Below are positions 30,511-64,000 of a DNA stretch of 64,000 nucleotides, piece by piece. The position numbers and the translations under genes were made by a program. The notes below the pieces were generated by a model. That model was given only the letters and a program-made list of their open reading frames with translations, was not told the DNA's origin and ran no database searches. Within the stretch, counting starts at the first letter, position 1. Every line of letters begins with the position of its first letter. The DNA lies in the IMG/VR virus record IMGVR_UViG_3300023174_002543, positions 62,001 to 126,000 of that record, one strand, 5' to 3'.

Positions 30511-30512
30511 AA

Positions 30513-31664: not shown

Positions 31665-31679
31665 CAATTAGAGAATACA

Positions 31680-41087: not shown

Positions 41088-41091
41088 ACAA

Positions 41092-41098
41092 CTAAATA
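41092..41098 (+). promoter_or_regulatory. Late promoter-like CTAAATA
   Basis: One mismatch to ATAAATA; intergenic, upstream of 41117. Confidence 0.45.
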
Positions 41099-41116
41099 TA
41101 CATAGAGATAATAAAC

Positions 41117-41917: not shown

Positions 41918-41918
41918 A

Positions 41919-42281
41919 ATGGCAAATCCAAACATAGTAAACGTAACGACAATCACAGGAAAAACAGCAGGACAGGCTATAACAACATCACCAACTGCAA
42001 TAGTAACTAATAGCGCCAGTAGTGGAAAATTATTAAAAATAAACTCATTATATATTTCAAATGTTAACGGGACAGGAAGTGCAGACGTTACAGTAGATGT
42101 TTATAAAAATGGTGCTACTGCTTATAGATTGGCATATTTAATCACAGTACCGGCAAAATCAACTATAAATGTAATTGCAAAAGATGTACAAGTTTATTTA
42201 GAAGAAAATGATAGTTTAAGATTAACTGCTAGTAGTAGTAGTTACCTTGAAGGTGTATGTAGTTATGAGGAAATTAGTTAA
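41919..42281 (+). CDS. Small beta-rich adaptor-like protein
   Basis: 120 aa; paralogue of 30139, ends CSYEEIS. Confidence 0.6.
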   Translation: MANPNIVNVTTITGKTAGQAITTSPTAIVTNSASSGKLLKINSLYISNVNGTGSADVTVDVYKNGATAYRLAYLITVPAKSTINVIAKDVQVYLEENDSLRLTASSSSYLEGVCSYEEIS

Positions 42282-43426
42282 TGAGTACTAATCCGTTTAA
42301 GGGACTCGGGGCAATAAATCTATTGCCATCAGATCCTGCTATATATCCAACAATGAAACTTAACAGCATCGGTGCACGTAGTATATCTTTGGGTATGCAA
42401 TATTTCTATAGCTACAATGGTTATTGGCCAAATCTTGGAACTAGTATGGGTATAGCAGTAGCACACGCAGGTAGTCCATATGTTACTATATATTCACAAT
42501 CAAACGACTTACTTAGTAAAGTAAATGATCCAACTACTTTACCTGCGTCAACGGCGCAGAGTGTTTCAGTTAGTCCTGATACCATATACCTAACAGTATC
42601 ACATGCAACTACCCCGTATATTACTATATATAAAAGAAGTGGTGATACATTCACTAAATTACCTAACCCAACTACATTACCTTCTAATACCACCTGGGCA
42701 ACGATGTTTAGTTCTGACGGGGTATACCTTGCAACTGTACACACAAATCCTCCTTATGTTACTATATATAAAAGAAATGGAGACACATTTACTAAATTAA
42801 CTGACCCAGCTACATTACCTGCATCTCTTGGTAATGGTGTAGCATTTAGTCCAGATGTTACATATCTGACCGTAGCACACGATACTACCCCGTTTATTAC
42901 TATCTATAAAAGAAGCGGTGACACGTTTACTAAATTAACTAATCCATCTACCTTACCCACTGGAGCAGGCAATGGTGTTGCATTTAGTGCAGATGGTACT
43001 TATATGGCAGTAGCCCATTCAATTACTCCATTTATTACTATCTATAAAATCGATAAAGCAACAGATACGTTTACTAAATTATCTAATCCAAGTACATTGC
43101 CTACAAATACCGCCAATGCTGTGGCATTTAGTCCAGACGGTACTTATTTAGCAGTAGGACACTCAGTGAGCCCATATATCACTATCTATAAAAGAAGTGG
43201 TGATACATTCACTAAGTTAAGTAATCCATCTACATTACCTTCACCTTCAACTACTATTAATTGTGTAGCATTTAGTCCTGATAATATTTATTTGGCATTA
43301 ACACATGCTGGCGGTACTTTTCTTGCTATATACAAAAGAAGTGGCGATACCTTCACTAAAATGAGTGATCCTAGTGTGATACCTGCCAGTGCGGCTAATG
43401 GGGTAACATTTATACCCGTAATATAA
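42281..43426 (+). CDS. Seven-bladed beta-propeller (WD40-like) protein
   Basis: Seven ~46-aa repeats of the type VAFSPDGTYLAV.H...PYITIYKRSGDTFTKL.NP.TLP. Confidence 0.8.
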   Translation: MSTNPFKGLGAINLLPSDPAIYPTMKLNSIGARSISLGMQYFYSYNGYWPNLGTSMGIAVAHAGSPYVTIYSQSNDLLSKVNDPTTLPASTAQSVSVSPDTIYLTVSHATTPYITIYKRSGDTFTKLPNPTTLPSNTTWATMFSSDGVYLATVHTNPPYVTIYKRNGDTFTKLTDPATLPASLGNGVAFSPDVTYLTVAHDTTPFITIYKRSGDTFTKLTNPSTLPTGAGNGVAFSADGTYMAVAHSITPFITIYKIDKATDTFTKLSNPSTLPTNTANAVAFSPDGTYLAVGHSVSPYITIYKRSGDTFTKLSNPSTLPSPSTTINCVAFSPDNIYLALTHAGGTFLAIYKRSGDTFTKMSDPSVIPASAANGVTFIPVI

Positions 43427-43442: not shown

Positions 43443-44150
43443 ATGGCATTAACACAACTAGAATCATACATGGTAAACAGTACAGGTACATCGTTTACTT
43501 TCCCAAATGTTACTGTAACCGGTAACGTAACAGGAACTTATTTTAATGGCAATGGTTCAGCATTAACCGGTATAGTAGCGACTGTTGCACAAACAGTAAC
43601 AACGGCTGCACAACCTAATATTACAAGTTTTGGTACACTAACCAATACAATATTAGGTGGAAGTAACTCATTTACCGGTGGTAATTTAGTAAGTGCTAAT
43701 TATGTAGCCGGCACACTAACAACAGCCGCACAACCCAATATTACTTCGGTTGGTATATTGACTGGTTTAACAGTATCCGGTCCCACCTCTTATGGATTAT
43801 CCTCTGACATTCTTATTACTAAGTCCGGTTCAACCGGGGTAGTAGTACATGATATAGCACCTGGCGCAGTTTTTTATCATACTAGTGTTGCCGCAAATTT
43901 TACTGCAAATTTTACTAATGTGCCTACTACTGAGGGTAGAGTATTAATGGCAACTATTATAATTAGTCAAGGTGCTACACCCTACATATCAAATGGAGTG
44001 CAAATTGACGGATCATCACAAACTATAAAATGGCTTGGTTCAGCCGCACCAACCGGCACTGCAAGTAAAATAGACATAATATCGTTTAGTTTAATAAGAA
44101 CAGGTGCTGCTTGGATCGTTCTTGGACAAGCGTCAGTAAATTACGGATAA
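43443..44150 (+). CDS. Short fibre protein with a C-terminal phage-tail-type beta domain
   Basis: MALTQ..FTFPNVTV, two QPNIT repeats, IIISQG..IKWLG..APTGT..DIISF..W. Confidence 0.6.
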   Translation: MALTQLESYMVNSTGTSFTFPNVTVTGNVTGTYFNGNGSALTGIVATVAQTVTTAAQPNITSFGTLTNTILGGSNSFTGGNLVSANYVAGTLTTAAQPNITSVGILTGLTVSGPTSYGLSSDILITKSGSTGVVVHDIAPGAVFYHTSVAANFTANFTNVPTTEGRVLMATIIISQGATPYISNGVQIDGSSQTIKWLGSAAPTGTASKIDIISFSLIRTGAAWIVLGQASVNYG

Positions 44151-44155
44151 TAACA

Positions 44156-45034
44156 ATGAGACTTAACTCGTTTTCTGGATCAAAAATATCGTCAGCTGCG
44201 ATCCCGGGTTCTAGTGGCGGCGGGGCCAGTCCAACAGGTCAAGTAGTTTTTGCTGTGAATATTGGTGGATCTACTTCATTGAATACAACATGGACTGCGC
44301 CTGCAGGTGTTACTAGTGTTAGTGTTTTAGTAGTCGGTGGAGGTGGATATAATGCAAGTATAAATAACGGAGGAACAGGTGGAGGTGGCGCCGGCGCACT
44401 GGCATATAAGAATAACATAACTGTTGTACCCGGGAATGGTTATGTGGTTGTAGCTGGTGGCTCAGGTAATCCAGGTCCAGGTGGTAGTTCGTCTTTTACT
44501 GCAGGATTTGGCACAATAACTGCCGGAGGCGGTGGTGGTTCTTCAGTTTTTAACGTTAGTGCTAGAAACGGTGGCGCAGGCGGACAACCATCAGGTGTAT
44601 ATGATGCAGGATTTGCGGGAGGTAATGGTGGAAGTTACGCAACTGGTACAGGTTGGGGAGGTGGCGGTGGGGCAGCCGGATATTCAGGGGCAGGCGGTAC
44701 TGGAGGAAGTAACAATGCTGCTGGCAATGCCGCCGCTACAGATAGCGGAGGTGGTGGCGGGGGCGGAAGTGGCTCAGGCCAAGGTGGCACAACAGGTGGA
44801 AATATAGGTTTATTAGGAAAAGGCTCAACCGGGACAGGCGGCGCCTCTGGTGCAAATCCCGGCAACCCGGGTAGCGATGGAGGGGCGGGTGGGCTTGGTG
44901 GTATGTTTGGATATGGTGGCGGTGGGTCTGGTTGGAACGGTGGGTCTAGTGCTATGGGAGGCAGGGGCGCAGTACGCATAATATGGCCGGGTACTACTAG
45001 ACAATTTCCATCAACTCAAACAGGTGATTTATAA
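44156..45034 (+). CDS. Glycine-rich-domain protein
   Basis: TWTAPAGVTSVSVLVVGGGG, GGRGAVRIIWPG..RQFPST; ATG 44156 preferred over the track's TTG 44111, which overlaps the upstream gene. Confidence 0.7.
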   Translation: MRLNSFSGSKISSAAIPGSSGGGASPTGQVVFAVNIGGSTSLNTTWTAPAGVTSVSVLVVGGGGYNASINNGGTGGGGAGALAYKNNITVVPGNGYVVVAGGSGNPGPGGSSSFTAGFGTITAGGGGGSSVFNVSARNGGAGGQPSGVYDAGFAGGNGGSYATGTGWGGGGGAAGYSGAGGTGGSNNAAGNAAATDSGGGGGGGSGSGQGGTTGGNIGLLGKGSTGTGGASGANPGNPGSDGGAGGLGGMFGYGGGGSGWNGGSSAMGGRGAVRIIWPGTTRQFPSTQTGDL

Positions 45035-45044
45035 GGATTAAAAC

Positions 45045-45470
45045 ATGTCATTAACACTAGTCAGGTCAACAGGTACAGATTTTACAGGAAATACAGTAAG
45101 TATATCCACAAACTATGGTGGAAATGTCCCACCTATCGTATTAAATGATATAAGCAACTACTTTGATGGTCAAACTTGCTTGTTTCCATTGAAGCAGGAG
45201 ACAAGTAGCATAAATACATTCATAGATTCAAAAGACATAATGGTCACGATTAATGGTATGGTTTTAAACCCATATGTAACAGAAAATCGCTTGCCATGGT
45301 TAGTTGACTATGATTCATATAGAGGATATAGAGTGGTAGGAAGTAATGTTGTTATTTATAATTCACCGGATCCCGGTGACCGCGCCACTGTAATTATCAT
45401 AGGTCAAAGTCAGACAAAACAAGTAAGAAGATACCCATTCTCACCAACAACAATAGGATTAGGAGATTAA
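45045..45470 (+). CDS. Hypothetical protein
   Basis: 141-aa ORF with AAGGA RBS; FTGDG-domain-like segment (YFDG..LFPL..DIMVTINGMVL). Confidence 0.55.
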   Translation: MSLTLVRSTGTDFTGNTVSISTNYGGNVPPIVLNDISNYFDGQTCLFPLKQETSSINTFIDSKDIMVTINGMVLNPYVTENRLPWLVDYDSYRGYRVVGSNVVIYNSPDPGDRATVIIIGQSQTKQVRRYPFSPTTIGLGD

Positions 45471-45474
45471 TTAA

Positions 45475-48400
45475 ATGGCAAAGCACGTAATCGCGGAACA
45501 ATATTCATTTAGCCCGCTAACAAAAACACTTGTAATTAGTAATAGATACTTACGACAAGAACAATTAATGTTAATTACAAACACCACACGTAACGTGGTT
45601 ATGTACAACTTCAGTGATCCTACATTGGGTGCTACAGTTACTAACGTAATTAACCCATTAAACGCACAACCAACATGTACTATTGTATTAAATTATAATA
45701 CTGCGGCACATAGTTCTAGTGATAAAATCTCTATTTTAGTTGAAGAAACAAGTGAGACATTTATTCCCCAAGAAGTGTTAGTTGATCCAGTTAATAAATT
45801 ACGTGTTAGTCAACCCCAGTCATTGATTGATACTGACTTTGAATATAGCCCACAAAATACCAAATGGGAAACATTGAACCTGATTAATAATAGACCTTTT
45901 GCTTATATCAATTCGTTTCTCCCAATTACTATCAGTGATATTACTGCAACTAGTAATAGTAGAACCATAACAATTACTTCAAATGGACATGGGTTGACGG
46001 CGGGAACACCTGTTAACGTTCAAGATACATTGTTTGGTGGCGCCGACGGTACATATATGATTGATAGCGTTACCTCCAATACAATCGTCTATACTTGCAG
46101 ATATACATACACAAGTGCTACTGGTACAATTTTTAATGCTAATACAACTACTGCATATCAAGGATACGTTTACACTGGTTCAGCGATTGCAATGACAAGT
46201 GCAACATATTCAGGTAGTTTAATTACCGTAACCACATCTGTAGCGCATGGATTGGCAATTGGTAATGAAATTGCGTTGACTGGTGCTACTGCAAGTACAA
46301 ACGCACCAAACGGTAGTTGGACTGTGTGTACAGTATTAAGTCCAACAGTATTCGTCTTCAACTCAAATGCAACACCAACTGGTACATTGAGCGTTGGTGC
46401 AGCAAGTTTATATGGTCGACCATTAGGTTCTGTTAATCATAGAGCATTTGATGGTGGTGTAACATTTAGTACAAATGCCGCAAGTCATAATCAACAATTT
46501 ATTCGTCAAACACGTAGATATTTCCGTTATCAATCTGGTAAAGGCATGCAAATGTCTACTGGTACTATTTTAGAACCAAACATTACAGTAGACCAAATTA
46601 TTAGTTCAGGTACTACTGTTACCGTGTATACCAAGTACCCACATAACTTACAAATGGGCGCTGATGTAACTGTTACCGGTTGTAATGAAACTGCGTATAA
46701 TGGTACATTCAAAGTATTATATGTATTGGATACATATCGTATTCAATATACTGCATTGAGTACCCCAAGTGCAACTATTGCTAGTGGTAATTATGTTCTG
46801 TCAATTAGCGGATGGTATGGTGGTGCAACACGTGTTGGATTATTTGATAATCAAAATGGTGTATTCTTTGAATATGACGGACAAAATATATTTGCTGTAA
46901 AACGTGCAAGCACTTTTCAATTATCAGGATTAGTATCAGTAACTGCTGGTTCTAGTACTGTAACAAGCGCAGGTATTAATGGTATTAATACGGTTTTTAG
47001 CAAGCAATTAGTACCCGGTGATTATATTGTTATTAAGGGTATGAGTTATCGAATAGATACAATTGCAAGTGATACATCTATGACAATACTACCTGCGTAT
47101 CGTGGTTCAGTCAACGTAACAAATGCGGTGGTCACTAGAACAATAGATCAGAAAACAATATCAACTAATTGGAATATTGATAAATGTAATGGTACTGGTA
47201 TTAGTGGATTCAATTTAGATTTAACTAAAATGCAAATGTTCTATTTAGATTATAGTTGGTACGGCGCTGGCTTTATTCGTTGGGGCTTCCGTGGATCAAC
47301 CGGTGATATTGTTTACTGTCATAAACTACCAAACAATAACGTAAACTATGAAGCATATATGCGTTCTGGTAACTTACCTGCACGTTATGAAACAACCACA
47401 TACCCCGCAGTTACAGTGTTAACATACCCAATTGCACAAAGTGATACAACTATCACAGTTGCAAGTACTGCGGGATTTAACAGTGTTGGTAGTGTGGTAG
47501 TCAGGGGTAATAGCAATTACGAATATATTAACTATACTAGTATTTCTGCAACACAATTTATAGGTTGTACCCGTGGTCAAAGTGGAGGAACAATTACAGT
47601 TTCTAGTACAACATTAGGTAGTAATGTACTATTAACAACTAATACGGGTGGTATACAAATAGGTCAATATATATTTGGTACTGGAATTCAAGCTACTGCA
47701 TATGTTACTGGTTTTGTACCTAATACAAGTATTACAATGAGTATTTCGGCTACTGCAAATGGAACAAACGTGAGTTTATATTTTGCCCCAATGGGAGTAA
47801 CTGCAGCAAGTAGTGGTACATTTGCATTAACTAACGCAACAACATCTCAACCAAGTGGTACTAACCCAATCGCAGTTGAACAACATTCACCTTTATATTC
47901 AAGTACAATCAGTCATTGGGGTACTTCAGTAATTATGGATGGTCGTTTTGATAACGATAAATCATATGTGTTTACTAGAGGTATGGTTACTGCGCTACAA
48001 GTTGGCGGCAACACGACAAATGCCATTATGAGTATTCGTATTGCACCTAGTGTAAGTAACGGTGTCGTTGGTACAGCATTGGGCATTCGTGAAATTGTTA
48101 ACCGCATGCAATTAGTTTTACAACAACTGGACGTTTTCAGTAATGGTCAATTCTTGATGACTTGTATATTGAACGGAATTACAAACAGTGCAACACCAAA
48201 CTGGCAACCAGTTGGCGGTTCTAGTCTAGCACAATATGTTTTCCATACAACTGGTACAACAATTCTAGGTGGTGAAACGGTTTATGGTTTCTACTTGAAT
48301 AGTTCAGGTGCTACAGGTGGTTCTACTACTCAGCAAGATTTGAACTTAGTTCGTGACTTGGGTACAAGTATATTAAGCGGCGGTTCTTTACTTGCTAACA

Positions 48401-48510
48401 CTGGCATCTATCCAGACGGTCCAGACGTTATTACAATTGTAGCGCAGAACTTAGCAGGTAGTTCAGGTAATTTACAGGCTCGTTTATCTTGGACAGAGGC
48501 TCAGGCTTAA
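45475..48510 (+). CDS. Large virion structural protein with FCCH-like inserted modules
   Basis: 1011 aa; LMLITNTT.N..MYNFSDP, RVSQPQSLIDTDFEY, RQTRRYFRYQSGKG, FYLDYSWYGAG.IRWG; repeated T.TT..HGL..G..V..G..NG module. Confidence 0.6.
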   Translation: MAKHVIAEQYSFSPLTKTLVISNRYLRQEQLMLITNTTRNVVMYNFSDPTLGATVTNVINPLNAQPTCTIVLNYNTAAHSSSDKISILVEETSETFIPQEVLVDPVNKLRVSQPQSLIDTDFEYSPQNTKWETLNLINNRPFAYINSFLPITISDITATSNSRTITITSNGHGLTAGTPVNVQDTLFGGADGTYMIDSVTSNTIVYTCRYTYTSATGTIFNANTTTAYQGYVYTGSAIAMTSATYSGSLITVTTSVAHGLAIGNEIALTGATASTNAPNGSWTVCTVLSPTVFVFNSNATPTGTLSVGAASLYGRPLGSVNHRAFDGGVTFSTNAASHNQQFIRQTRRYFRYQSGKGMQMSTGTILEPNITVDQIISSGTTVTVYTKYPHNLQMGADVTVTGCNETAYNGTFKVLYVLDTYRIQYTALSTPSATIASGNYVLSISGWYGGATRVGLFDNQNGVFFEYDGQNIFAVKRASTFQLSGLVSVTAGSSTVTSAGINGINTVFSKQLVPGDYIVIKGMSYRIDTIASDTSMTILPAYRGSVNVTNAVVTRTIDQKTISTNWNIDKCNGTGISGFNLDLTKMQMFYLDYSWYGAGFIRWGFRGSTGDIVYCHKLPNNNVNYEAYMRSGNLPARYETTTYPAVTVLTYPIAQSDTTITVASTAGFNSVGSVVVRGNSNYEYINYTSISATQFIGCTRGQSGGTITVSSTTLGSNVLLTTNTGGIQIGQYIFGTGIQATAYVTGFVPNTSITMSISATANGTNVSLYFAPMGVTAASSGTFALTNATTSQPSGTNPIAVEQHSPLYSSTISHWGTSVIMDGRFDNDKSYVFTRGMVTALQVGGNTTNAIMSIRIAPSVSNGVVGTALGIREIVNRMQLVLQQLDVFSNGQFLMTCILNGITNSATPNWQPVGGSSLAQYVFHTTGTTILGGETVYGFYLNSSGATGGSTTQQDLNLVRDLGTSILSGGSLLANTGIYPDGPDVITIVAQNLAGSSGNLQARLSWTEAQA

Positions 48511-51927: not shown

Positions 51928-51948
51928 TAACTTAATTTTAGGGGTAAC

Positions 51949-54900
51949 ATGGCAGACTCAAGCCTATCTAGTTTAGCACTATCCACATATAGCACAAATA
52001 CTTATTACAGTACATGGTTTAGTGGCACAGGATATTTAACTATACCAGCCGGATCTCAACTTGAATTTGGTGCTAATAATTTTACTATTGAGTTATGGTG
52101 GTACCCCACTTCAACAGTAAGACAAGCAATATATCATGGTAGTTTTGGTACAGATTGGTCTGTTGGTATTGACTATAATTCAGTCAGTACGAATAAAATT
52201 GGAATTTGGGCTAGTAGTAACGGTACTAGTTGGAATTTAATTAACAGTGACGCTGCTGGAAATGGTATAGGTACAATAACACCAACACAAAATGCATGGA
52301 ATCATATAGCGTATGTACGTAATGGTACAACATGGTCATTATATGTTAATGGTGTTGTAAGTGTAAATATTACTGGTTTGTCAGGTACGATTGTAAGTAG
52401 ATCCGCATCTACTAAAGCAATTGGTTGTTGGTGGTCAACAGGTGCTATGAGCCAAATACAAGGTTACGTAAGTAATTTTAGAATTCTTAATGGTACAGCA
52501 TTATATACCACAGCCTTTGATCCTCCCATCCAACAATTAACTGCAATTGCAAATACTGTTTTATTAACTTGTCAAAATATTACATCGATAGATAATAGTA
52601 CTGCTAATGGCGGAGTTGGTTTTGCTATTACCAGAAATAGCACTACCATCGGTGTTAGGCAGTTTACCCCACCATTATTAGTAACCAGTTCAGCAACATT
52701 AACTCCTACTTATAATAGCGGCACATTAACTTATACATTTAGTGCACCTACTAACATCTCTGTGATAAGAGTAATACCAACTGCAAATGATGCTGCAAAT
52801 GCAAGTATTAAATTCAACGGCAATGTTACATTAACTAGCGGTCAACCAACGGTAGCAAGTGCTGCACCATATTTGAATAGTGGCTATAGTGCAAACTTTG
52901 TTAGTGGTTTATTACAAACCGCACATAATACCAATCTTAACATAGCTGGATATGCTTGGACTATTGAGTTTTGGACATATATTACTACAAGTAGCCTTAC
53001 ATGTATATTTTTTACAAAAAAAGCAAGCGGCGCAAGTACCGGTATAGCATATCAAGGTGGATTGCAATCAGGGGTACCGAGTTTTAGCCAGGCAGGTAGC
53101 ACTAGTTTTGTCAACACCGGCATACGTATGCCATTAAATGCATGGACGCATGTTGTGTACGTATATGACGGTGGTGTTGCATCCACTAGTACGGGAAACA
53201 TATCCGTATACTTTAATGGTGAAAAGGTGGTTAACTTTGTTGTTAATACCTTTGTAGACAACACAGAACCATTGACTATTGGTGGTAGTAGAGGTTTAAC
53301 AGAATGGACAATTGGCAACATCAGTAACTTCAGAATGGTTAAGGGTTATCAATTATATAATGGTAATTTTACACCACCAACACAACCTTATGGTTTAACT
53401 CAACCTGCAAGCGCAGGTGTTCCTGCAATTATTAGTTCTGATATTAATAGCGGGTTTTTTAGTGGTACTAATGCATATCTTACTGTTCCTGGTACCAATA
53501 TAACTAATATTTTTACAGGTGATTTTACAATTGAAGCATGGTTATATCCAACTGCTGCCTTTGGCGCTTCTTGGGTTACGGCTGATGGTGGATTTTCAGA
53601 AATCCCAGTAATGATTTGTAACGCATCACCAACTGCGTTAAATTATTATTGGGCATTTGGTCCTAGTAGTACAGGTACTGTTAGATTTATTACTAGTTCT
53701 ATATATTTTAATACGGTAACTTCAACTGCAACTTGTACTGTTAATGCTTGGAATCATCTAGCACTTGTTAAAATTGGTACTACATATAAAATTTATGTTA
53801 ATGGCATAGGAACTTCAGGTACTACTATAACTACTTCGCCTGGTACAGCCTTTTCAGATGCTGTGGGTATTTCTATTGGTGCAAACAATAATAAATATGT
53901 CACTGGTTATATTAGTAATGCAAGAATAGTTAAAGGCACTGCCGTATATACTGAAAATTTCAGACCTTCAATCACACCATTAACTGCTATTTCAAATACA
54001 AGTTTATTAGTATTACAAAATAGATTAACCAGTGATGCAAGTACAAATAACTTAACACTAACAAACACTAACGTTACTGTAAATACTTCTATAACTCCAT
54101 TTGTTCTACCAGTTACAAGTTTAGTACAACCAAACGGTAGTAGCGTATTTTTTAACGGTAGCACATCACTAAGCGGTAGTGCTGACTTTACTGCAACAGG
54201 TAATTTTACAATTGAATGCTGGATTTATCCTACAGTATCTACTGAATGTGATATTTTAAAAATAGGTAATGAAGCAACGGGTCGTATAGTATTTGGTACA
54301 GGTTTGCCTGCAGCCGGTAATTTGTTTTATAACATTTATGGTGGAAGTAGCATTGTGATTGCTACAGGTATATCGACCAACACATGGCAACATGTCGCTA
54401 TTGTAAGAATCGGCACAACACTTACAGGTTATATCAATGGTGTTGCTGGAACTCCTGTAACAGGTGTGTCTGGAACATTAGGTAACACTAGTGGATTTAG
54501 TACAATGACTACTGGTACTGGATACATTACTAATTTGCGTTATGTTGTTGGCACTGCCTTATATACAAGTAACTTTAACGTATATAATTCACCACTAGTT
54601 ACAATAACAAATACAAAATTATTAATATTACAATCAAGTGTCACTACTGATAGTAGTACAAATAATTATACATTAACACCTACTTCACCTGCACCAACAT
54701 TATCAACTACAATCACCCCGTTTATAACTTACGGTGCAGCCAGTACACAATTCTTAAGCACTGCACTTGCATATCAAACTGTGGCAAATCCATATAGTCT
54801 TGCACTATCAATGGGTCAAGGACATAATAATTTTACTGCTGAAGCATGGGTATATTTAACCGCTAGTCCTGGTGGAGCACCAGGTGCTTTTATCATGCAA

Positions 54901-57900
54901 AAGGGTACAGGAGCAACAGGTGGCGTAGAGTGGGCTTTTAGTGTATACAATACTGGTATTTATTTTACATATGTTTCAGGTATCCCAACAGGCACTACTA
55001 CAAGCAATTCAATTACTGCAAATATTGTCACTGGTAGATGGATGCATTTGGCATTTACAAAAGTTGGAACTAGTTTGCATTTTTGGCTTAATGGAACTTA
55101 TGTTTATACACTTAATGGTGTGAACAATTTATATTATACTGCACAATATAATAGTTATTTTACTGTTGCAAATAATCAAGCCGCTAGTGGCGCTGCATTC
55201 CCAGGATTCATTAGTAACGCACGTGTAGTATACGGTAAAGCAATATATACTACCAACTATGATGCACCGTTTATACCAAGCACTACACCATTAACTGTTA
55301 CACAAACTGCAACCTCATCAATTGCTAGTATTGATAATGCTAATTCATATAATATAGTTAACGGTAATAGTGTATTCTTTAATGGTACTAATGACTTCTT
55401 AACATTCCCTGAGCCAGCAAACTTATTTAATAGTGCATTATTTAACGGAACGAATCAATTTTTAATTCTCAACTCTGCATCACCGGGCCCGGCATTTGCT
55501 TTTGGTACGGGTGATTTTACTATTGAATTTTATTTTAATGGACCACCACAAACTAACAGGTTCTTTTATGATAATAGACCTAGCTCACCTAACGGATATC
55601 CACATGTAACTACAGGACTTACTACCAGCGTACTACGTTGGGGACCTACCAATCTACAAGGATCAATAATTATAGGTGATAATAAATGGCACCATTGTGC
55701 AGTAACAAGAGAGTCAGGTACAATAAAACTTTGGATAGATGGAGTATTAGACACAAGCGGCAGTGATACAACAAATTATAGTACCAATTATGGCGTCTAT
55801 ATAGCTTTTGATTCTGTTCCTTCAACTTGGCTAGCAGGCTTTTTAAGTAATTATCGTATTATAAAAGGTACTGCATTATACACAACAAATTTCACACCAA
55901 GTACAACACCATTAACAAGAACAAGCCAAGGCGCTATAGCAAGTCAGGTTTCGTTATTGACTTTGCAAAATCCTACAATCGTAGACAATTCAACTAATGC
56001 ATTTACTATTACAAACAGCGGAACGCCGTCAACACCAACATCACTAAATCACCCATTCGCACTATACGTAGGTGATGGTACAAACGTAACAATTGAAGCG
56101 TGGATTATGTTAGGTTCGGTACCAACTGCTCCGAGAGGTTTTATTATTAATAATAGTGCAACCACTACAGGTTATTTTGGTATTGCGGTCGAATCAGGTA
56201 CAACAAATGCAGCACGTTCTATATCAGTATGGAGTGACAGTAACGCTACATCAGTACTAGCATCAACCACATTAGTTCCATTATATACATGGACACATGT
56301 TGCAGTAATGTTTGCTAATAATTTAATAACAGTTTATATCAACGGTGTACGTGATGCAACTACTGTTGCTAAAACTACTATTTGGCAAGCCGCGACATTG
56401 GGTACAGTGTATATCGGCAGACAGGCAAGTACAGCTGCACAATATTTTCCTGGATATATAACTAATTTAAGAGTAGTATATGGAACCGCTCTATATTCTA
56501 TAAATACAGTCAAGTTCACTGTACCCACAGGCCCATTAACTGCAATCACAAATACAGTATTCTTGGGATTACAGTCTAGCGTTACATTTGATGCCAGTAC
56601 TAACAATGCAACAATAACAAAAGGGTCAGGCGCAACTGGTTTAATACTAGCACCATTAACAAGTCCATTCCAAACTTATTTACCAAGTGTTACCAATGGA
56701 TATAGTATTGGGCTTGGATTTCTTGGTTCAGGAGCTAATGATTACATTAGCTATATCTTTGGTAATGGAGTTGCTGGCATTCAAATGACAGGTGATTTTA
56801 CTGTTGAAACTTGGGTGTTCTTACCACAATATCCTAGCAATAGAATTGCTATTCTCAATAGTCAAAACACAGCCAATGACGCTGGCGCCGGATGGGATAT
56901 TCTATCTACTGGTCAAGTTTCATTTAACTCGGGTGGTAACACGTGGCTTAGTAGTACTACTTTTATTGGAATTAACACTTGGTATCATCTAGCACTTACT
57001 AGACAAAATTCTACTGTTAGATTGTGGATTAATGGTGTGCAGGATGTCACAACTGGTACAACTACAGTTTCATTTGCTCAACCTAGCACTAACGTAATAT
57101 ATATAGGACGTAACGCATCAGGCTTAGTTGGAAACGCTTATTTTAGCAATTATAGATGGTTTATTGGTACATGTTTATATACCGGTACTTTTACCCCAAG
57201 TCTAACACCATACGCAACAACAACTAATGCAAATGCAAATGTATCGGCAGTAAATGGTATAACATCATATCCCAATATAGGAAGTTATGGTCTTACTTAT
57301 AGCGGTAGTATAAGTATGACTAACGCTGGTCATGCAGTTACTAGTACTACTGTAGGAACTTATACTGGTTATTGGGATTTGGCTACATATGATTTTACTG
57401 TTGAAGCATGGTTTAATAACACACTAATGACAGGATTTGGTAGTATTACTGCAATCGTAATTGCGGGTAATGGTGCAAATGCATCAGACAATGCGTGGTC
57501 ATTATCTACGACAAAATCTAGTTTAACTCAAGCAACACTAATTTTCTCTAGTGGTGGCTCTGGTCAAGCGCAACAACTAACACACACAACCCCAACACTT
57601 AATATTAACTCAAATCAATGGTATCATGTTGCAGTAGTTCGTATAGGAATCACACATACAATATATCTAAATGGTTTACCGGTTAGTGTATTCATATTGT
57701 CTAGCGGACAGTTGATGGGCGCTACAGCAATGCCTTCAACTTATGCAAAAATTGCGATTGGTTCTAATTTGTCAAATGGAACAGTAACACAACCCTTCAA
57801 CGGTTATATTAGTAACGTTCGTGCAATAAAGGGATATGGTGTGTATACTGGTCAATTCTTACCAAGTACAAGTCCATTAACAAACACACAAAGTGCAGTT

Positions 57901-60900
57901 AACAATAATAATGCAATTACAGGCACAGTTACCAGTTTACTAGCATTGCAAAATTCAACTACCTTAGATGCAAGTTCAAATAATTTAACATTAACTGCTA
58001 CCGGTAGCCCAACAGTAAGTTCAACAGTTGTTCCTTTTCTACCTGGTGTAAATGGTTATAGCACTTACTTTAATGGTACTACTGATTATATTCAGATGCC
58101 CATCCCAACATCAGCCGCTACTGCTGCAAATGGGCAGTTTACGCTTGAAACATGGATATATTGTACTAATATCTTAACTAATCCTTTTATTGTAAGTTCT
58201 TGGTATTTCTCAACTCCGTTGTCAAGTTCATGGCAATTGCAATTGTTTAATGGTTATTTACAATTTGGTTATGGAATTGGTAGTGTTACTAATACTATAA
58301 CCGGTACTACTAGAACAGTTTCATCTAGTACATGGACTCATGTTGCAGTAACAAGAGATTCAAACAATCTTATTACTTTCTATGTGAATGGTATAGCAGA
58401 TGCCACTACAACAACTGTAGTAGGTACATTTAATACCAACGTTAATCAAGGTGTAAGAATAGGATCAGGTGTTGGTTCTGGTCAGGCTTGGTTATTGGGA
58501 TTTCAAGGATATATCAGTAACTTAAGATTTGTCAGAGGTATAACTGTATACACCGGTGCATTCACACCACAAACAACACCATTAACTGTAACACAAAGTT
58601 CAGGTACTAATATTAGTGCAATTTCTGCTGCCGCATCAAATGCATATAGTCTTGCATTTGTTGGCAATAACGGTGCAGCATTAGCCAACGTTAATATTCC
58701 GCAATATCTTAGCGTATCAGGTGGGTCGTTATTCAACTTTGGTACAGGTAATTATACAATTGAATGCTGGGCATATGCAAATACTATTAGTGATGGTAGA
58801 ACTATATTCAATATGTATTCAAGTTTTTTTGGAACCTTTATCAGATATGCAAGCACAACCGGATGGCAACTATATTATAATGCCGGTGGAAGTTCAACTA
58901 CCTATACTTTTAACAGTACCAATAGTGGACTTGGTTTTTGGGTTCATCATGCACTAGTTAGGTCTAGTGGTACACTATATTGGTATATTAATGGAGTGAA
59001 TGTGTTCAGTGTAGCAGAGTCTACGAATTATGTATACACTACATTAGATATCGGATATTATAATTCACCTACATACAATTGGAGCGGATTCATTAGTAAC
59101 TTTAGAATTGTTAAAGGAACTGCAATCTATACTAGTGGTACAGCATCATTTACCGTACCTACTTCCCCGTTGACTGCGGTTGCAGGCACATTGATATTAA
59201 CTGGACAAAATGCAACTATCGTTGATAACGGTACTGCAAACTTTGGTGCTAGCTTTACTATTTTTAATAATAACGCAGTTACAACCACTGCACTTATTTC
59301 TCCGTTCATAAGTGGAAATACACAATTATTATTGTTGCAATCTCCCACATTATTTACATCAATGACTGATGCTGGACCTAGTAACTTTATGGGAACAGTT
59401 ACAGGATTACCAGTAGTTAATACTACTAGTATGACATTTTCACCGTTCTTGAATGCTAACGGACGTAGTGTATTCTTTACAGGAAGCAGTCAATATATAA
59501 CTGCACCAAGCAACAGTGTATTTACATTTGGTACAGATGATTTTACTATTGAGGGTTGGATATATTTAGTAAATGGTACTACAAGTGGCACATTATATGA
59601 TGCCAGAACAGGTTTAACTACCGTTAGCGCACAAATTTACATTCAATCAAACATTGTTAATTATGCAGTGGCAGGTGTTAGTGTCATTAATTCTAGTACA
59701 ACAATACAACCATTAAGTACTGCAACATGGTATCACATCGCAGTGGTTCGTATTTCAAATGTAACAAGATTATATGTAAACGGGTTGCAAGCAGGTAATA
59801 GTTATGTAGATAATAATAACTATGTTATCGGTGCACCGTATATTGGTACCGGCTTCGGTTCTAGCAATCCATTGAATGGATATATTAGTAATCTACGTGT
59901 AGTTGATGGCACCGGAGTATATTCAAATAGTTTTGTTGTTCCAATTACACCATTAACAAGTACACAAAGTAGTAGTTCAAGTATTATAGCATTGAATAAT
60001 GCAACACCAGTTTTAGGTAATAGTGTTTATTTTAACGGCGCTAGTGATTATATGAAAGTTTCTGGTGTAGTGTCTTTCATGAATACAGGCGACTTTACAA
60101 TTGAAACATATTACTATCCAACTAGTTTTGCAGCAGTCACTACATTATTTGGTCAATATACAGCCGCAACAACAGCATTGGGCTATTGGAACGTTCAAAT
60201 AACTACTGCAGGTATTATAACGGTATACTATAATGGTTCTACTAACTTTCCTGCAAGTACTGCAATTTTTGTTAATGAATGGGTACATATTGCACTAGTA
60301 AGAATTAGCGGTACTATTACATTATATGTTAACGGGGTAAGTTACGGAACAGCGAGTTTTGCAACTCAGTTTGGTTTAACAAGTATCTCATCACCGTTAT
60401 TTATTGGTGCAACACAGTTAAGTGGACCAGTGCAATATGCGTTAGGTTATATGAGTAACTTCCGTATTGTTAAAGGTTTAGGTGTTTATACAGGAGCATT
60501 TACAGTACCAACTAGCCCATTAGGTAGTACACAAAGTTCAGGTACTAATATCGCTGCAATAACCGGTACAAGTACAAGTTTACTTCTATTCCAAAATTCA
60601 CCTTATACCGACAATAGTACATTCAATAATCCTATAACAGGTTTTGGTAATCCATTATATTCACCAGTATTCAGTCCATCATTCTTTAGTTATCCAACTC
60701 CGGCAAACGGTAATAGTGGTTACTTCAATGGTTCAACTTCATATCTATCACTAACACAACCTAGCAATGCAAGTACAGGTGATTTTACAATTGAATTATG
60801 GGCTTATCCTACATCACTTACCGCTATAGGTTATTTAATGAGCACAAGCACTGCTGCATCTACTGCTTCTACTACTAACGGATATGTAGCATTAAACGGT

Positions 60901-63900
60901 ACAACTCAATATCTAACTGTACCTTCTAATAACGGATTTGTTTTTGGTACAGGAGATTTCACAATTGAATGTTGGGTACTAACTAGTCAGGCGGCTACGA
61001 ACGGTGCATCAACAACGGATAGATTCATATTTGGTGCTATTGGAAATACTCCTTCATGGTCTATATATCTTCAAAACGGTGCTACATTAATACCTAATTT
61101 TTATTCACCAACCGGATCTGTGGCTAGCTCAATATCTGTTTCAACGGGTGTTTGGACTCATATAGCGGTCGTAAGATATAGTGGAAACATGTATATATAT
61201 GTTAACGGTGCATTGGGAGGTACTGTAGCAAATAATACTAACTATACTGCTAGTGGAACACAATATATAGGTCGTGCTGATGATGCTGCTAATAAATTCT
61301 TCAACGCAAATATTTCTAACTTAAGAGTTGTAAAAGGTACAGCAGTTTATACTGGTGCATTCTCAGTACCAACATCACCGTTAACCGCTATACAACTTTC
61401 AGGATTGAACATATCGGCCATTAGTGCAGGTGTTGCAGGAACTAGTGGCACACAATTATTAGCATTACAGTCTGCTCTTACTACTGATGCTAGTGTGAAT
61501 GCACTTACATTAACTGCCATAGCTACTCCAACATTTACTGCCTCAGGTGGTCCAATCACCGGTAGCCCTCTTAGCGCAGGTTCTTTCCATCTATGGATAG
61601 CCACTAACGGTACAGTAAATTTGGCTGTAGATCAGGCTGCTGTAAGTATTGTTAGTGTATTCCCTTCAGTGGCTAAACAAAATACATGGACACATGTTGC
61701 GATTACACGAACCAACGGCGTAGTATATTTATTTGTCAATGGTTATAGAGTGGCTTCATCACTAGCTAAAACAACATTGTGGGGTGGTACTGATACATTA
61801 AACATTGGTCGTTATCAGCCAAGTGGAAATCAATACTTTGTAGGATATATCACTAACGTGAGATTTGTATATGGAACGTCAGGAATATACACAAGTAATC
61901 CATTAACTCCACCTTACACTACACCATTGACTGCTGTTACAGGTACAACATTGTTATTGTTACAATCAACACTAACTAAAGATAATAGTGCTAATAACGT
62001 AACAGTTACAAATAATAATGTGATATTATCAACGTATACCAATCCGTATACAACAATGAAGTTGCCATTCTTATTAAGTGCTCAAAATGGATATGGTATC
62101 AATGCCGGCACCGTAGTAAGAGATAATAGTATATTTAACACTTCATTACAAAGTACCAGCACTAGTTATGTAACATATATGGCTGCAGTAAGTCCTTTTG
62201 GAGTGACCCCCACTCTACTAGTTGGTCAATCAGCCATGCAACGTGATGAAAGTATCAACAGCCTAGTTCCACAAACAATTACCACAACAGCCACAATAAT
62301 GCCTTATGTAACACCATTCAGTGGTAATGCAGTTGCATTTAACGGCAGTACAAGTTATATTACTGGTACTAACTTATACAACAGTTTGGGCGGGGACTTC
62401 ACAATTGAATTCTTTATGATGGCAGGTCCACAAACTGCTACAGTCGGTGGATTACTGTTAGGCAGAAACATAAGCTGGTCTACTACAAATAATAATTATT
62501 ATATCATGTGTAGTTCACCCGGTGGAGTTGGGAAAAACTCATTACAAACTATACAAATTTATAACCCGCTTATTAGTATAACTTCACCTGTGTATTTAGG
62601 ATTAACCTCGGTTTGTGATAGCAAATGGCATCATATTGCTATTGTAAGAATTAATGGTATTGTAAAAATATACATCGATGGAGTATTAGATACAAGTCCG
62701 TTTAGTAGCTTTGCGAATACGGGTATTTGGGACTATAGCAATTATACTATTGGTAGTAATCCAAATGACGCTGGGTCAACAGTAGCCCAATTAGCATACA
62801 ACGGTATGTTAAGTAACTTGCGTATTATTAATGGTACCGGTATTTACACAGGCACGTTCACCCCTCCTACAAATAACTTAACAACATCACAATCTAGTAG
62901 AACAAATGTTGTTCAATATACATCAACAACACCAAGTTCAACAGGTTATAGTTTGCAATTTAATTCAGCGACTGGTAGTTATCTAACTACAACCTATTCC
63001 CCTGTACTAAGTTTAGGAACAAATGACTATACGATTGAGTTCTGGCACTTCTTATCAGGTAAATCAGCAGCAAATCAACCTTGTTTGTTCAGTAATGCTA
63101 ATAGTTCTAGTGCTGGCGTTTTAAATATGTATGCCGGACATGCTAGTGCCAATGTACTAAAATATCAACTTGCATTTAACACTCAGTCGGTAATAGCTAC
63201 TTATATAACCATGCAAAGTGTATCAAATATCATCTATGGCAAGTGGACACATATTGCATTGGTAAGAAGATCAGGGGTTGTGTATCTATATATTAATGGT
63301 ACACTTGATTCTACTAGCGGTTTAGGTAATTATTCTGTATACAGTTCTCAATGGTACATAGGTAATGATGTGACAAATTCAGCTTTAGGATATATTTCTG
63401 GCTTCATCAGCAACTTCCGTGTCACAAACGGTCTAGCAGTTTATACCGGTAACTTTACAGTACCAACTAGTGCATTAACAACAACACAAAGTTCAGGTAC
63501 AAACATTGCTGCAATAACCAATACAAGTCTGGCTAATGGTGGTGCAATATCTATTGTAGCCAGTGGTTCACAATATATAAATACCACCATGGTATTAACA
63601 ACTGCAACCACTAACATGACAGTTGAGGCTTGGGTAAATTTCACTTTATTCCCAACGTCAAATACTTGGATAGGTGGCACTGCAACTATTTTTAGTACAA
63701 GCGGTAATAGTTATTCAAGCGGTATACATTTTGTATTAGGTTCAACTAATATATATGTTGTAATAACAAATACTGTATACGGTGGTTATGCACACAACAT
63801 GGTTGCTGGAACTTGGTATCATCTTGCGTATGTTATAAATAACGGGGTCGTTACATTCTTTATAAATGGTATTTCTGTGGGTAGTATATCAGGTATCCCT

Positions 63901-63999
63901 GTTACTTTTGGAGCACCTAGTTATTCTGTAATAGGTGCATCTGATACCAGCGGATCATATGGTATCGGTAGTATTGGTGGCGGTAGCGTTGGGTACATT
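51949..63999 (+). CDS. Giant multi-LamG/ConA-like adhesin-like protein, at least 4017 aa, truncated by the window end
   Basis: ATG 51949 (MADSSLSSLALSTY); manual translation of many segments gives 18 xTxE.W cores in the same frame up to ...GSVGYI. The track lists no + ORF here, as expected if there is no in-frame stop inside the window. Confidence 0.9.
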   Translation, partial: MADSSLSSLALSTYSTNTYYSTWFSGTGYLTIPAGSQLEFGANNFTIELWWYPTSTVRQAIYHGSFGTDWSVGIDYNSVSTNKIGIWASSNGTSWNLINSDAAGNGIGTITPTQNAWNHIAYVRNGTTWSLYVNGVVSVNITGLSGTIVSRSASTKAIGCWWSTGAMSQIQGYVSNFRILNGTALYTTAFDPPIQQLTAIANTVLLTCQNITSIDNSTANGGVGFAITRNSTTIGVRQFTPPLLVTSSATLTPTYNSGTLTYTFSAPTNISVIRVIPTANDAANASIKFNGNVTLTSGQPTVASAAPYLNSGYSANFVSGLLQTAHNTNLNIAGYAWTIEFWTYITTSSLTCIFFTKKASGASTGIAYQGGLQSGVPSFSQAGSTSFVNTGIRMPLNAWTHVVYVYDGGVASTSTGNISVYFNGEKVVNFVVNTFVDNTEPLTIGGSRGLTEWTIGNISNFRMVKGYQLYNGNFTPPTQPYGLTQPASAGVPAIISSDINSGFFSGTNAYLTVPGTNITNIFTGDFTIEAWLYPTAAFGASWVTADGGFSEIPVMICNASPTALNYYWAFGPSSTGTVRFITSSIYFNTVTSTATCTVNAWNHLALVKIGTTYKIYVNGIGTSGTTITTSPGTAFSDAVGISIGANNNKYVTGYISNARIVKGTAVYTENFRPSITPLTAISNTSLLVLQNRLTSDASTNNLTLTNTNVTVNTSITPFVLPVTSLVQPNGSSVFFNGSTSLSGSADFTATGNFTIECWIYPTVSTECDILKIGNEATGRIVFGTGLPAAGNLFYNIYGGSSIVIATGISTNTWQHVAIVRIGTTLTGYINGVAGTPVTGVSGTLGNTSGFSTMTTGTGYITNLRYVVGTALYTSNFNVYNSPLVTITNTKLLILQSSVTTDSSTNNYTLTPTSPAPTLSTTITPFITYGAASTQFLSTALAYQTVANPYSLALSMGQGHNNFTAEAWVYLTASPGGAPGAFIMQKGTGATGGVEWAFSVYNTGIYFTYVSGIPTGTTTSNSITANIVTGRWMHLAFTKVGTSLHFWLNGTYVYTLNGVNNLYYTAQYNSYFTVANNQAASGAAFPGFISNARVVYGKAIYTTNYDAPFIPSTTPLTVTQTATSSIASIDNANSYNIVNGNSVFFNGTNDFLTFPEPANLFNSALFNGTNQFLILNSASPGPAFAFGTGDFTIEFYFNGPPQTNRFFYDNRPSSPNGYPHVTTGLTTSVLRWGPTNLQGSIIIGDNKWHHCAVTRESGTIKLWIDGVLDTSGSDTTNYSTNYGVYIAFDSVPSTWLAGFLSNYRIIKGTALYTTNFTPSTTPLTRTSQGAIASQVSLLTLQNPTIVDNSTNAFTITNSGTPSTPTSLNHPFALYVGDGTNVTIEAWIMLGSVPTAPRGFIINNSATTTGYFGIAVESGTTNAARSISVWSDSNATSVLASTTLVPLYTWTHVAVMFANNLITVYINGVRDATTVAKTTIWQAATLGTVYIGRQASTAAQYFPGYITNLRVVYGTALYSINTVKFTVPTGPLTAITNTVFLGLQSSVTFDASTNNATITKGSGATGLILAPLTSPFQTYLPSVTNGYSIGLGFLGSGANDYISYIFGNGVAGIQMTGDFTVETWVFLPQYPSNRIAILNSQNTANDAGAGWDILSTGQVSFNSGGNTWLSSTTFIGINTWYHLALTRQNSTVRLWINGVQDVTTGTTTVSFAQPSTNVIYIGRNASGLVGNAYFSNYRWFIGTCLYTGTFTPSLTPYATTTNANANVSAVNGITSYPNIGSYGLTYSGSISMTNAGHAVTSTTVGTYTGYWDLATYDFTVEAWFNNTLMTGFGSITAIVIAGNGANASDNAWSLSTTKSSLTQATLIFSSGGSGQAQQLTHTTPTLNINSNQWYHVAVVRIGITHTIYLNGLPVSVFILSSGQLMGATAMPSTYAKIAIGSNLSNGTVTQPFNGYISNVRAIKGYGVYTGQFLPSTSPLTNTQSAVNNNNAITGTVTSLLALQNSTTLDASSNNLTLTATGSPTVSSTVVPFLPGVNGYSTYFNGTTDYIQMPIPTSAATAANGQFTLETWIYCTNILTNPFIVSSWYFSTPLSSSWQLQLFNGYLQFGYGIGSVTNTITGTTRTVSSSTWTHVAVTRDSNNLITFYVNGIADATTTTVVGTFNTNVNQGVRIGSGVGSGQAWLLGFQGYISNLRFVRGITVYTGAFTPQTTPLTVTQSSGTNISAISAAASNAYSLAFVGNNGAALANVNIPQYLSVSGGSLFNFGTGNYTIECWAYANTISDGRTIFNMYSSFFGTFIRYASTTGWQLYYNAGGSSTTYTFNSTNSGLGFWVHHALVRSSGTLYWYINGVNVFSVAESTNYVYTTLDIGYYNSPTYNWSGFISNFRIVKGTAIYTSGTASFTVPTSPLTAVAGTLILTGQNATIVDNGTANFGASFTIFNNNAVTTTALISPFISGNTQLLLLQSPTLFTSMTDAGPSNFMGTVTGLPVVNTTSMTFSPFLNANGRSVFFTGSSQYITAPSNSVFTFGTDDFTIEGWIYLVNGTTSGTLYDARTGLTTVSAQIYIQSNIVNYAVAGVSVINSSTTIQPLSTATWYHIAVVRISNVTRLYVNGLQAGNSYVDNNNYVIGAPYIGTGFGSSNPLNGYISNLRVVDGTGVYSNSFVVPITPLTSTQSSSSSIIALNNATPVLGNSVYFNGASDYMKVSGVVSFMNTGDFTIETYYYPTSFAAVTTLFGQYTAATTALGYWNVQITTAGIITVYYNGSTNFPASTAIFVNEWVHIALVRISGTITLYVNGVSYGTASFATQFGLTSISSPLFIGATQLSGPVQYALGYMSNFRIVKGLGVYTGAFTVPTSPLGSTQSSGTNIAAITGTSTSLLLFQNSPYTDNSTFNNPITGFGNPLYSPVFSPSFFSYPTPANGNSGYFNGSTSYLSLTQPSNASTGDFTIELWAYPTSLTAIGYLMSTSTAASTASTTNGYVALNGTTQYLTVPSNNGFVFGTGDFTIECWVLTSQAATNGASTTDRFIFGAIGNTPSWSIYLQNGATLIPNFYSPTGSVASSISVSTGVWTHIAVVRYSGNMYIYVNGALGGTVANNTNYTASGTQYIGRADDAANKFFNANISNLRVVKGTAVYTGAFSVPTSPLTAIQLSGLNISAISAGVAGTSGTQLLALQSALTTDASVNALTLTAIATPTFTASGGPITGSPLSAGSFHLWIATNGTVNLAVDQAAVSIVSVFPSVAKQNTWTHVAITRTNGVVYLFVNGYRVASSLAKTTLWGGTDTLNIGRYQPSGNQYFVGYITNVRFVYGTSGIYTSNPLTPPYTTPLTAVTGTTLLLLQSTLTKDNSANNVTVTNNNVILSTYTNPYTTMKLPFLLSAQNGYGINAGTVVRDNSIFNTSLQSTSTSYVTYMAAVSPFGVTPTLLVGQSAMQRDESINSLVPQTITTTATIMPYVTPFSGNAVAFNGSTSYITGTNLYNSLGGDFTIEFFMMAGPQTATVGGLLLGRNISWSTTNNNYYIMCSSPGGVGKNSLQTIQIYNPLISITSPVYLGLTSVCDSKWHHIAIVRINGIVKIYIDGVLDTSPFSSFANTGIWDYSNYTIGSNPNDAGSTVAQLAYNGMLSNLRIINGTGIYTGTFTPPTNNLTTSQSSRTNVVQYTSTTPSSTGYSLQFNSATGSYLTTTYSPVLSLGTNDYTIEFWHFLSGKSAANQPCLFSNANSSSAGVLNMYAGHASANVLKYQLAFNTQSVIATYITMQSVSNIIYGKWTHIALVRRSGVVYLYINGTLDSTSGLGNYSVYSSQWYIGNDVTNSALGYISGFISNFRVTNGLAVYTGNFTVPTSALTTTQSSGTNIAAITNTSLANGGAISIVASGSQYINTTMVLTTATTNMTVEAWVNFTLFPTSNTWIGGTATIFSTSGNSYSSGIHFVLGSTNIYVVITNTVYGGYAHNMVAGTWYHLAYVINNGVVTFFINGISVGSISGIPVTFGAPSYSVIGASDTSGSYGIGSIGGGSVGYI

Positions 64000-64000
64000 A

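Follow-up and report, generated by a model that had tools for sequence, protein, structure and literature searches.

LamG units inserted within LamG units along the sequence of a giant phage protein

A giant gene of the phage contig IMGVR_UViG_3300023174_002543 (367,104 bp) encodes an array of laminin G (LamG) units in a product of 8,153 amino acids (aa). Our analysis started from 64,000 nucleotides of this contig (its positions 62001–126000, below called the window), and the gene was followed to its end on the same contig. Some LamG units of the product are interrupted by complete LamG units, and others are parted by complete units from their own C-terminal strands; relatives that lack exactly one such unit have a continuous host. 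Along the whole protein the two parts of the units, cores and tails, are nearly equal in number and ordered like opening and closing brackets. We consider it probable that this arrangement arose as whole, permuted LamG units were repeatedly inserted, in frame, at a small number of permissive sites, a process that would produce a tree of beta-sandwiches.

Repeat units and the units that interrupt them

The array lies in one stop-free frame of the plus strand (51931–63999), which runs off the window end. The start codon is the ATG at 51949, with an AGGGG-type ribosome site upstream. Residues are numbered pN in the frame counted from nucleotide 51931, the start methionine being p7, and window-equivalent positions extend the window numbering past 64000 on the source contig. 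In the part of the protein encoded in the window, Pfam recognizes 18 stretches of Laminin_G_3 (PF13385; 768 bits in total versus a cut-off of 27.6) and nothing else of note.

The repeat consists of a core of ~170 aa followed by a tail of ~40 aa (LLxLQ..D.S.N..PF). The core contains, in this order, the strands 'FFNG', 'FTIEAW', 'WxHVA', 'lYvNG' and 'GYISNxRxVKG', and leads into the connector 'PLT.TQSS'. An initial annotation of the window had taken a 'PLT.TQSS..N..AI' loop for the ending of units without a tail; this loop ordinarily connects core and tail and occurs in tailed units as well (e.g., p2696 and p2986). Single units score 45–48 bits against PF13385; since this profile starts at the 'FDG' strand, Pfam coordinates are unable to place the tail. 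We used a unit hidden Markov model (HMM) of 201 positions, built from the giant protein itself, and a dedicated tail HMM to count tails. Among 110 units, 27–43% identical to the reference unit, the characteristic tail residues (two Leu, Asp, Ser, Thr, Gly and Pro) show a conservation of at least 90%, as the key core residues do.

Both interrupted units described in the initial annotation were recovered. In case (a), an orphan first strand (p1144–1164) precedes a full unit (p1167–1378, HMM positions 2–201), after which the host resumes at p1383–1582 from HMM position 25. In case (b), p2927–2983 corresponds to HMM positions 1–58, p2986–3210 to positions 4–200 and p3216–3375 to positions 51–201. 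In both cases the host is discontinuous with complementary parts, and the insert is a complete domain in itself. The two arrangements of supernumerary tails were found as well: in case (c), the unit p2258–2460 has its own tail and is followed by an extra one (p2463–2505), and in case (d) three tails are stacked (p3338, p3381 and p3427; tail HMM). The count of 18 cores versus 13 tails in the window also holds, all 13 tails having independent expectation values (E-values) of 4e-5 or better. Cores and tails are designated C and T below, and their coordinates are listed in Table 1.

A protein search yielded 216 homologues, mostly metagenomic giant LamG arrays of up to ~7,000 aa. A metagenome scan returned only ~30% identical, non-collinear relatives, as its patterns were generic repeat motifs. 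The close relative at locus L002 shares the architecture, with identities of 76% over p2511–3464, 52% over the region of case (a) and 33% over that of case (c). The window segment was aligned with L002 and the whole proteins P0001–P0010, and the segment placement was checked. Case (b) shows a clean indel of ~240 aa: the query, L002 and P0001 contain the insert and P0002–P0010 do not, the host being uninterrupted in the latter ('...YLLSTST' running directly into 'CFHLWI...'). P0002 and P0010 are without the insert of case (a), and their counterpart of the orphan strand continues straight into the 'VTIEAW' strand; among orthologues, the inserted unit is variable and the parts of its host are conserved. 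In case (c), the orthologue of C2042 is directly followed by one tail in six relatives (P0001, P0005–P0008 and P0010), and the query, L002, P0002 and P0004 carry an extra core and tail between the C2042-type core and the second tail. The tail of the short form is closer to T2463 than to T2420, only weakly. In a fourth case, P0001 and P0003 are without core C5337, and the three tails that they retain match T5568, T5610 and T5652, not T5526 (scores 105 vs 84 and 120 vs 79); what these two proteins lack is thus C5337 together with T5526, one contiguous unit, which leaves T5568 as the partner of C5156.

Homologues without the insert, which the initial annotation had proposed to look for, were thus found for cases (a), (b) and (c) and for C5337+T5526; in each of them the host is continuous and exactly one core-plus-tail unit is missing. 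Large indels among 12 relatives are all of ~200–235 aa or multiples of this length, and a core is always lost together with a neighbouring tail. Other relatives are split at other sites: homologue P0005 at HMM position 148, and the cores of a distant clade (P0014, P0016, P0020, P0023, P0025, P0029, P0031 and P0037) near HMM positions 100–125, with two to six complete cores per loop, possibly a different, more extreme nesting habit. Blocks of the form core-core-tail-tail recur at ~33% identity along the giant protein, e.g., around p2040, p4720 and p6301, which shows that already-nested blocks have themselves been duplicated as higher-order repeats. At the level of sequence, the orthologues with and without inserts show the recursive insertion suggested in the initial annotation.

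The inserted units also bear on how the unit is to be delimited. All of them begin at the 'FNG' strand and end with the tail. The canonical LamG order, with N-terminal strands ahead of the 'FDG' strand, was not found in these units; when a profile is built in the order tail, core, it aligns unbroken with canonical jelly-rolls whose N-terminus carries tail-like strands. Since that profile aligns as a whole, whereas the inserts are always written core-then-tail, we read the unit as a putative circularly permuted member of the Laminin_G_3/concanavalin A-like fold. The permutation would put both ends of the unit side by side, explaining why units can be inserted into loops. The possibility that a tail belongs to the following core, as in the canonical order, was ruled out: non-tandem inserts are all core-first and tail-last, the hosts of case (a) have no preceding tail in the short-form orthologues, and the gene ends in tails with no later cores.

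Balance and bracket order of cores and tails

The full gene encodes 34 cores and 33 tails, 16 and 20 of them, respectively, beyond window position 64000. The initial annotation had predicted about five more tail segments there; the surplus exists and amounts to four. The counts are thus balanced in the full gene, and the LamG region ends in seven consecutive stacked tails (p7562–7904). In no prefix of the protein do tails outnumber cores. If 34 cores and 33 tails were arranged at random, this prefix rule alone would hold with a probability of 2/35 (ballot theorem).

When the last-opened core is matched with the first tail available, the assignments that had been ambiguous in cases (c) and (d) become definite: T2463 pairs with C2042, T3381 with C2511 and T3427 with C1600. 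Nesting is then of several levels in the sequence, as the split host of case (b) lies within C2511–T3381, itself within C1600–T3427. Of the terminal tails, the six surplus ones are matched with C6745, C5873, C5691, C3695, C3465 and C962, and C321 is the only core that stays open. The bracket parse is 8 levels deep, or 7 levels if C321, which is never closed, does not truly count as open.

Between the first tail and the second core, which is C321, ~74 aa encoded at 52669–52890 (+) have a weak match to a Cadherin-like beta-sandwich (E = 8e-5, just under the Pfam cut-off).

The balance is kept in relatives with other numbers of units. In nine complete close homologues (21–30 cores) and the 34-core query, cores exceed tails by 1–3 when split hosts are counted once, and the prefix rule is kept by eight of these nine and by the query, P0009 dipping to -1. 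Among distant homologues, nine cores in a row precede eight tails in P0018, and the run CCCCTTTT occurs in P0032. Family-wide, the prefix rule is kept in 89 of 119 proteins versus 48.5 expected after shuffling, as judged with a general tail HMM (110 diverse units) that misses many stacked tails and so undercounts tails across these proteins. Some distant arrays had appeared to be tail-less; this was rejected, as they contain one divergent tail-like linker per core.

Fourteen cores are without an adjacent tail, and closing them within the chain requires partners up to ~6,900 residues away, while six surplus tails are clustered near the C-terminus. Phage fibres are usually oligomers, and the surplus tails might instead complete cores of neighbouring chains by strand donation in trans, knitting a multimeric fibre or virion lattice. 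Pairing in trans does not require the strict bracket order, however, and the short-form orthologues indicate that each separated pair was once adjacent in the same chain, so that we consider this arrangement improbable.

Taken at its fullest, pairing within the chain would make all 8,153 aa one rooted tree of 34 beta-sandwiches, 14 of them completed by strands that follow 200 to ~6,900 residues later; we give this an even chance. If it is true, the last ~350 LamG residues zip shut six domains opened as early as residue 962, joining the N-terminal part and the C-terminus, in the longest-range domain completion known in a single polypeptide. Folding would then be strictly hierarchical, from the inside out, with long-lived open sandwiches during translation. 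This raises the questions of how a ribosome-bound chain could hold up to eight sandwiches open and whether the stacked C-terminal tails act as a 'zipper'.

Structure prediction, selection and alternative explanations

AlphaFold2 predicted one core-plus-tail unit from a deep alignment (110 units) as a two-sheet jelly-roll sandwich, with a mean predicted local distance difference test score (pLDDT) of 86 and a predicted template modelling score of 0.85. The tail reaches a pLDDT of 92–95, forms three strands and is predicted as part of its sandwich in this model, where one core is present; on this basis the tail is confidently predicted to dock on its own core. In Foldseek searches, the single-unit model has template modelling (TM) scores of 0.77–0.86 to many phage concanavalin A-like proteins over the whole unit, 0.64–0.67 to the LamG domain of PAPP-A and to 4dqa, and 0.5–0.6 to pentraxins and neurexin LNS domains; it also matches a Bacteroides carbohydrate-binding protein. 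A profile match of the unit to 4qvs has E = 4e-18. Matches to the lectin-like subdomain of clostridial neurotoxin/NTNH proteins (PF07953) are at the level of the fold only: a precomputed Pfam tag on homologues, a Foldseek TM score of ~0.5 and profile E-values of 1e-3 to 4e-6. Pfam found no protease, translocation, ganglioside-binding or other domain of clostridial neurotoxin proteins in the giant protein, which is not a toxin relative in any functional sense. Calling these units 'lectin', as the initial annotation did, is an assumption from the fold.

A second model covered 954 aa (p2511–3464) with an alignment of 12 rows and had a mean pLDDT of 61, the cores scoring 70–88. The N-terminal part of the split host of case (b) forms four strands (pLDDT 71/56/78/82 in blocks of ten residues) and its C-terminal part, likewise predicted as strands, scores 52–87; these values fit a folded discontinuous domain, and the inserted core scores ~70–87. 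Foldseek confirmed the LamG fold of this model, and as its output comes without residue ranges, the co-folding of the two halves is not demonstrable from it. Since every tail in the model scores low, the model says nothing either way on the stacked tails.

The low scores of all tails in the 954-aa model, adjacent ones included, and the weaker conservation of distant tails would also be expected if real nesting were confined to the loop insertions (a) and (b), the tails being semi-independent linker or stalk modules, the tail-less cores stable alone, the stacked tails flexible or folded into a structure of their own, and the protein mostly beads on a string. Against this, the deep-alignment model integrates the tail into the sandwich with high confidence; the tail is as conserved as the key core residues; one tail goes with each core also in simple arrays of distant relatives; homologues that differ in unit number keep balanced counts, with no tail preceding an open core; and indels always take a core plus its neighbouring tail. 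We therefore regard independent linkers as unlikely.

The pattern of selection was estimated from the ratio of non-synonymous to synonymous substitution rates (Ka/Ks) between the query and L002; Ks is ~1, near saturation, and the ratios are rough. They are 0.34 for cores, 0.27 for adjacent tails, 0.45 for distant tails (pooled), 0.16 for the orphan strand of case (a), and 0.20 and 0.25 for the host halves of case (b). Constraint is clear for the split pieces; for the distant tails, too short to be judged singly, it is weaker but present in the group as a whole. Repeat arrays recombine readily and some tails are divergent (T3381 and T7729), as would be expected if orphan strands and extra tails were decaying leftovers of unequal recombination with no structural role. 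Such an origin is hard to reconcile with split pieces that are complementary within a few residues, are under strong purifying selection (Ka/Ks 0.16–0.25) and are kept in relatives 43–76% identical, nor does it fit the pooled ratio of distant tails or the balance kept across relatives; we consider it very improbable.

The explanation that we prefer, recurrent insertion of permuted units, would work as follows. Whole units would be copied and inserted in frame, repeatedly, into other units at permissive sites: after the first strand in case (a), after the fourth strand in case (b), near HMM positions 100–148 in relatives and, most commonly, in the connector that leads from a core to its own tail, as in cases (c) and (d). 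The tail would supply the strands that canonical jelly-rolls carry N-terminally, and with its ends made adjacent by the permutation a whole unit could be dropped into a host loop without breaking the host. The chain would then read as balanced brackets, in which each core opens and one tail later closes, and the folded protein would be a sandwich tree ~7–8 levels deep. The view of the initial annotation that the protein is branched rather than beads on a string thus stands for the nested insertion in the sequence, given the orthologues and the balance; the physical tree, that is, the three-dimensional reassembly of split halves and distant tails and the adjacency of unit ends, is what we infer from it.

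Several observations weigh against recurrent insertion and closure within the chain. Co-folding of split halves and closure by distant tails are predictions from sequence, not observed contacts. All tails are low in the 954-aa model (pLDDT 22–56), including those that adjoin their own core, and the single-unit model alone is no proof of the pairing in the array, since AlphaFold2 would place any tail in a groove that is free. C321 has no tail at all, and the balance might in part simply reflect that units always arise as core plus tail. Evolution is faster in distant than in adjacent tails (52% vs 67% identity), and single tails have Ka/Ks of 0.46–0.76 on ~40 codons each. Matching of core and tail subtypes in a Mantel-type test gave no signal even for adjacent pairs (r = 0.05), the test being without power. 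The one positive sign is that the four distant 'FTIEGW'-type cores receive, by bracket pairing, the tails ranked 1–4 of 14 in similarity to the tail of the one adjacent FTIEGW unit; it is a weaker clue in favour of the pairing, as the pattern was noticed before it was tested.

Genomic setting and comparison with known systems

Table 1. Coordinates of the giant gene, its LamG elements and two genes of the upstream module (window numbering).
Feature	Position	Strand	Basis or remark
Giant LamG-array gene	51949..64000, continues to window-equivalent 76410	+	Stop-free frame, start context, 18 Laminin_G_3 stretches; end found in locus L005 (same contig)
Core C962, no adjacent tail; matched tail T7866 (window-equivalent 75526–75639)	54814..55359	+	Last-opened, first-closed matching
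(a) Detached first beta-strand ('FFNG..FLTFPEP') of host C1383	55360..55422	+	Contiguous with host 'VTIEAW' strand in P0002 and P0010
(a) Inserted complete unit: core C1167 (55429–55944) and tail T1339 (55945–56061)	55423..56064	+	HMM 2–201; not in P0002 and P0010
(a) Remainder of host C1383 (HMM 25–201) with own tail T1541 (56551–56670)	56065..56670	+	Unit and tail HMM
Core C1600, no adjacent tail; predicted closing tail T3427	56728..57324	+	
Simple unit: core C1818 and tail T2001	57382..58041	+	
(c) Host core C2042, parted from its tail	58054..58701	+	Orthologous core directly followed by a single tail in P0001, P0005–P0008 and P0010
(c) Inserted complete unit: core C2258 and tail T2420 (59188–59310)	58702..59310	+	
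(c) 'Orphan' tail T2463, assigned to C2042	59317..59442	+	Tail HMM, independent E-value 2e-9; one contiguous insertion is the parsimonious reading
Core C2511 ('FTIEGW' type), no adjacent tail; predicted closing tail T3381	59461..59991	+	
Simple unit: core C2696 and tail T2882	60016..60684	+	
(b) N-terminal part of split host (HMM 1–58, four strands)	60709..60879	+	
(b) Inserted complete unit: core C2986 (60886–61446) and tail T3173 (61447–61554)	60886..61566	+	HMM 4–200
(b) C-terminal part of split host (HMM 51–201) with tail T3338 (61942–62052)	61576..62052	+	
(d) Stacked tail T3381, assigned to C2511	62071..62205	+	Independent E-value 4e-5; conserved in all orthologues
(d) Stacked tail T3427, assigned to C1600	62209..62322	+	Independent E-value 1e-10
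Cores C3465, C3695 and start of C3874; first two without adjacent tails, predicted tails T7778 and T7729 beyond the window	62323..64000	+	
Major head protein	1961–3157		phrog_138
Virion structural protein	45475–48510		45% identity to T4-like cyanophage proteins (S-PM2, S-RSM4)

Upstream of the giant gene, large structural genes on one strand fill positions 1–51918 of the window (~52 kb). The major head protein and a virion structural protein are encoded in the same one-strand module, which places the giant gene in the virion module. A near-identity DNA search found no close match among GenBank phages. Together with the fold, the context suggests that the giant protein is a multivalent surface adhesin or decoration, possibly a glycan-binding fibre. 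Its C-terminal ~255 residues (L005 13322–14086; window-equivalent 75643–76407) are not LamG, contain short internal repeats of the 'NANI..ANY' type and have no Pfam match; they could be an attachment or tip domain.

Two further proteins of the structural block contain LamG domains: a 1,604-aa protein encoded at 31680–36494 (+), with six Laminin_G_3 stretches and He_PIG Ig-like domains, and a 298-aa protein encoded at 13108–14004 (+), with one LamG. Both hold full core-plus-tail units (unit HMM). The block also includes several open reading frames of 1,000–1,700 aa with no or weak family matches (e.g., 14047–19137, 26949–30137 and 36505–39801) and a gene at 42281–43426 (+) for a 381-aa WD40/beta-propeller-like protein, which has Pfam Lactonase and WD40-type matches and a match to phrog_19311 (E = 7e-42). 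Four 2-kb bins (24001–26000, 30001–32000, 40001–42000 and 44001–46000) have a G+C content of 0.42–0.435 and a strong positive GC skew, the background being 0.36–0.38.

In fold and Pfam family (Laminin_G_3), the giant protein resembles neurexin LNS1–6, laminin LG1–5 and the phage structural proteins annotated as 'Concanavalin A-like lectin/glucanase'; neurexin, laminin LG, PAPP-A, pentraxins and many uncultured-phage and cyanophage structural proteins are among the Foldseek matches. Tandem LamG/LNS arrays are described as beads on a string of continuous domains, whereas the units of the giant protein are permuted and nested. Such giant proteins of phages, abundant in the viromes of lakes and the sea, would be misdescribed if their Pfam hits were counted as beads. 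A literature search for nested LamG domains in phage proteins found none.

An altered strand order is known from concanavalin A, which has the same sandwich as other legume lectins in a circularly permuted form. The giant protein would likewise have its sandwich written in an altered order; unlike the post-translational rearrangement of concanavalin A, its permutation would be genetic and would make the unit insertable. Completion of a sandwich by a strand from elsewhere is known from chaperone-usher pili, where the incomplete beta-sandwich of one subunit is completed by a strand from another subunit. The likeness to such donor-strand complementation ends with the source of the strand: judging from the bracket order and the short-form orthologues, the giant protein would draw it from its own chain.

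The closest parallel is provided by the Si3 insertion of the beta' subunit of cyanobacterial RNA polymerase, in which crystallography revealed eight sandwich-barrel hybrid motifs (SBHMs), four of them discontinuous (PMC10895346), and which has been described as a six-level recursive insertion (PMC13114784). In both proteins copies of one small beta fold are inserted recursively in the same fold, giving rise to discontinuous domains from distant parts of the chain. They differ in that Si3 is built of SBHMs in a loop of an enzyme and its structure is solved, whereas the giant protein is built of LamG/pentraxin jelly-rolls in a protein of a phage virion module and its structure is a prediction. 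The giant protein is also far larger, with 34 units and 14 separated core–tail pairs up to ~6,900 residues apart, and its main insertion site is the connector ahead of the last strands of the unit.

In summary, domain insertion is common, while recursive self-insertion has one well-studied example, the SBHMs of Si3; the giant protein extends the same principle to another fold and another setting at four times the size. Its orthologues with and without each insert are natural intermediates, from which the growth of the tree may be read step by step. The rule suggested by these sequences, to permute a sandwich so that its ends meet and then to insert it, could explain very large, bushy phage surface proteins and suggests a design route for multivalent binders.

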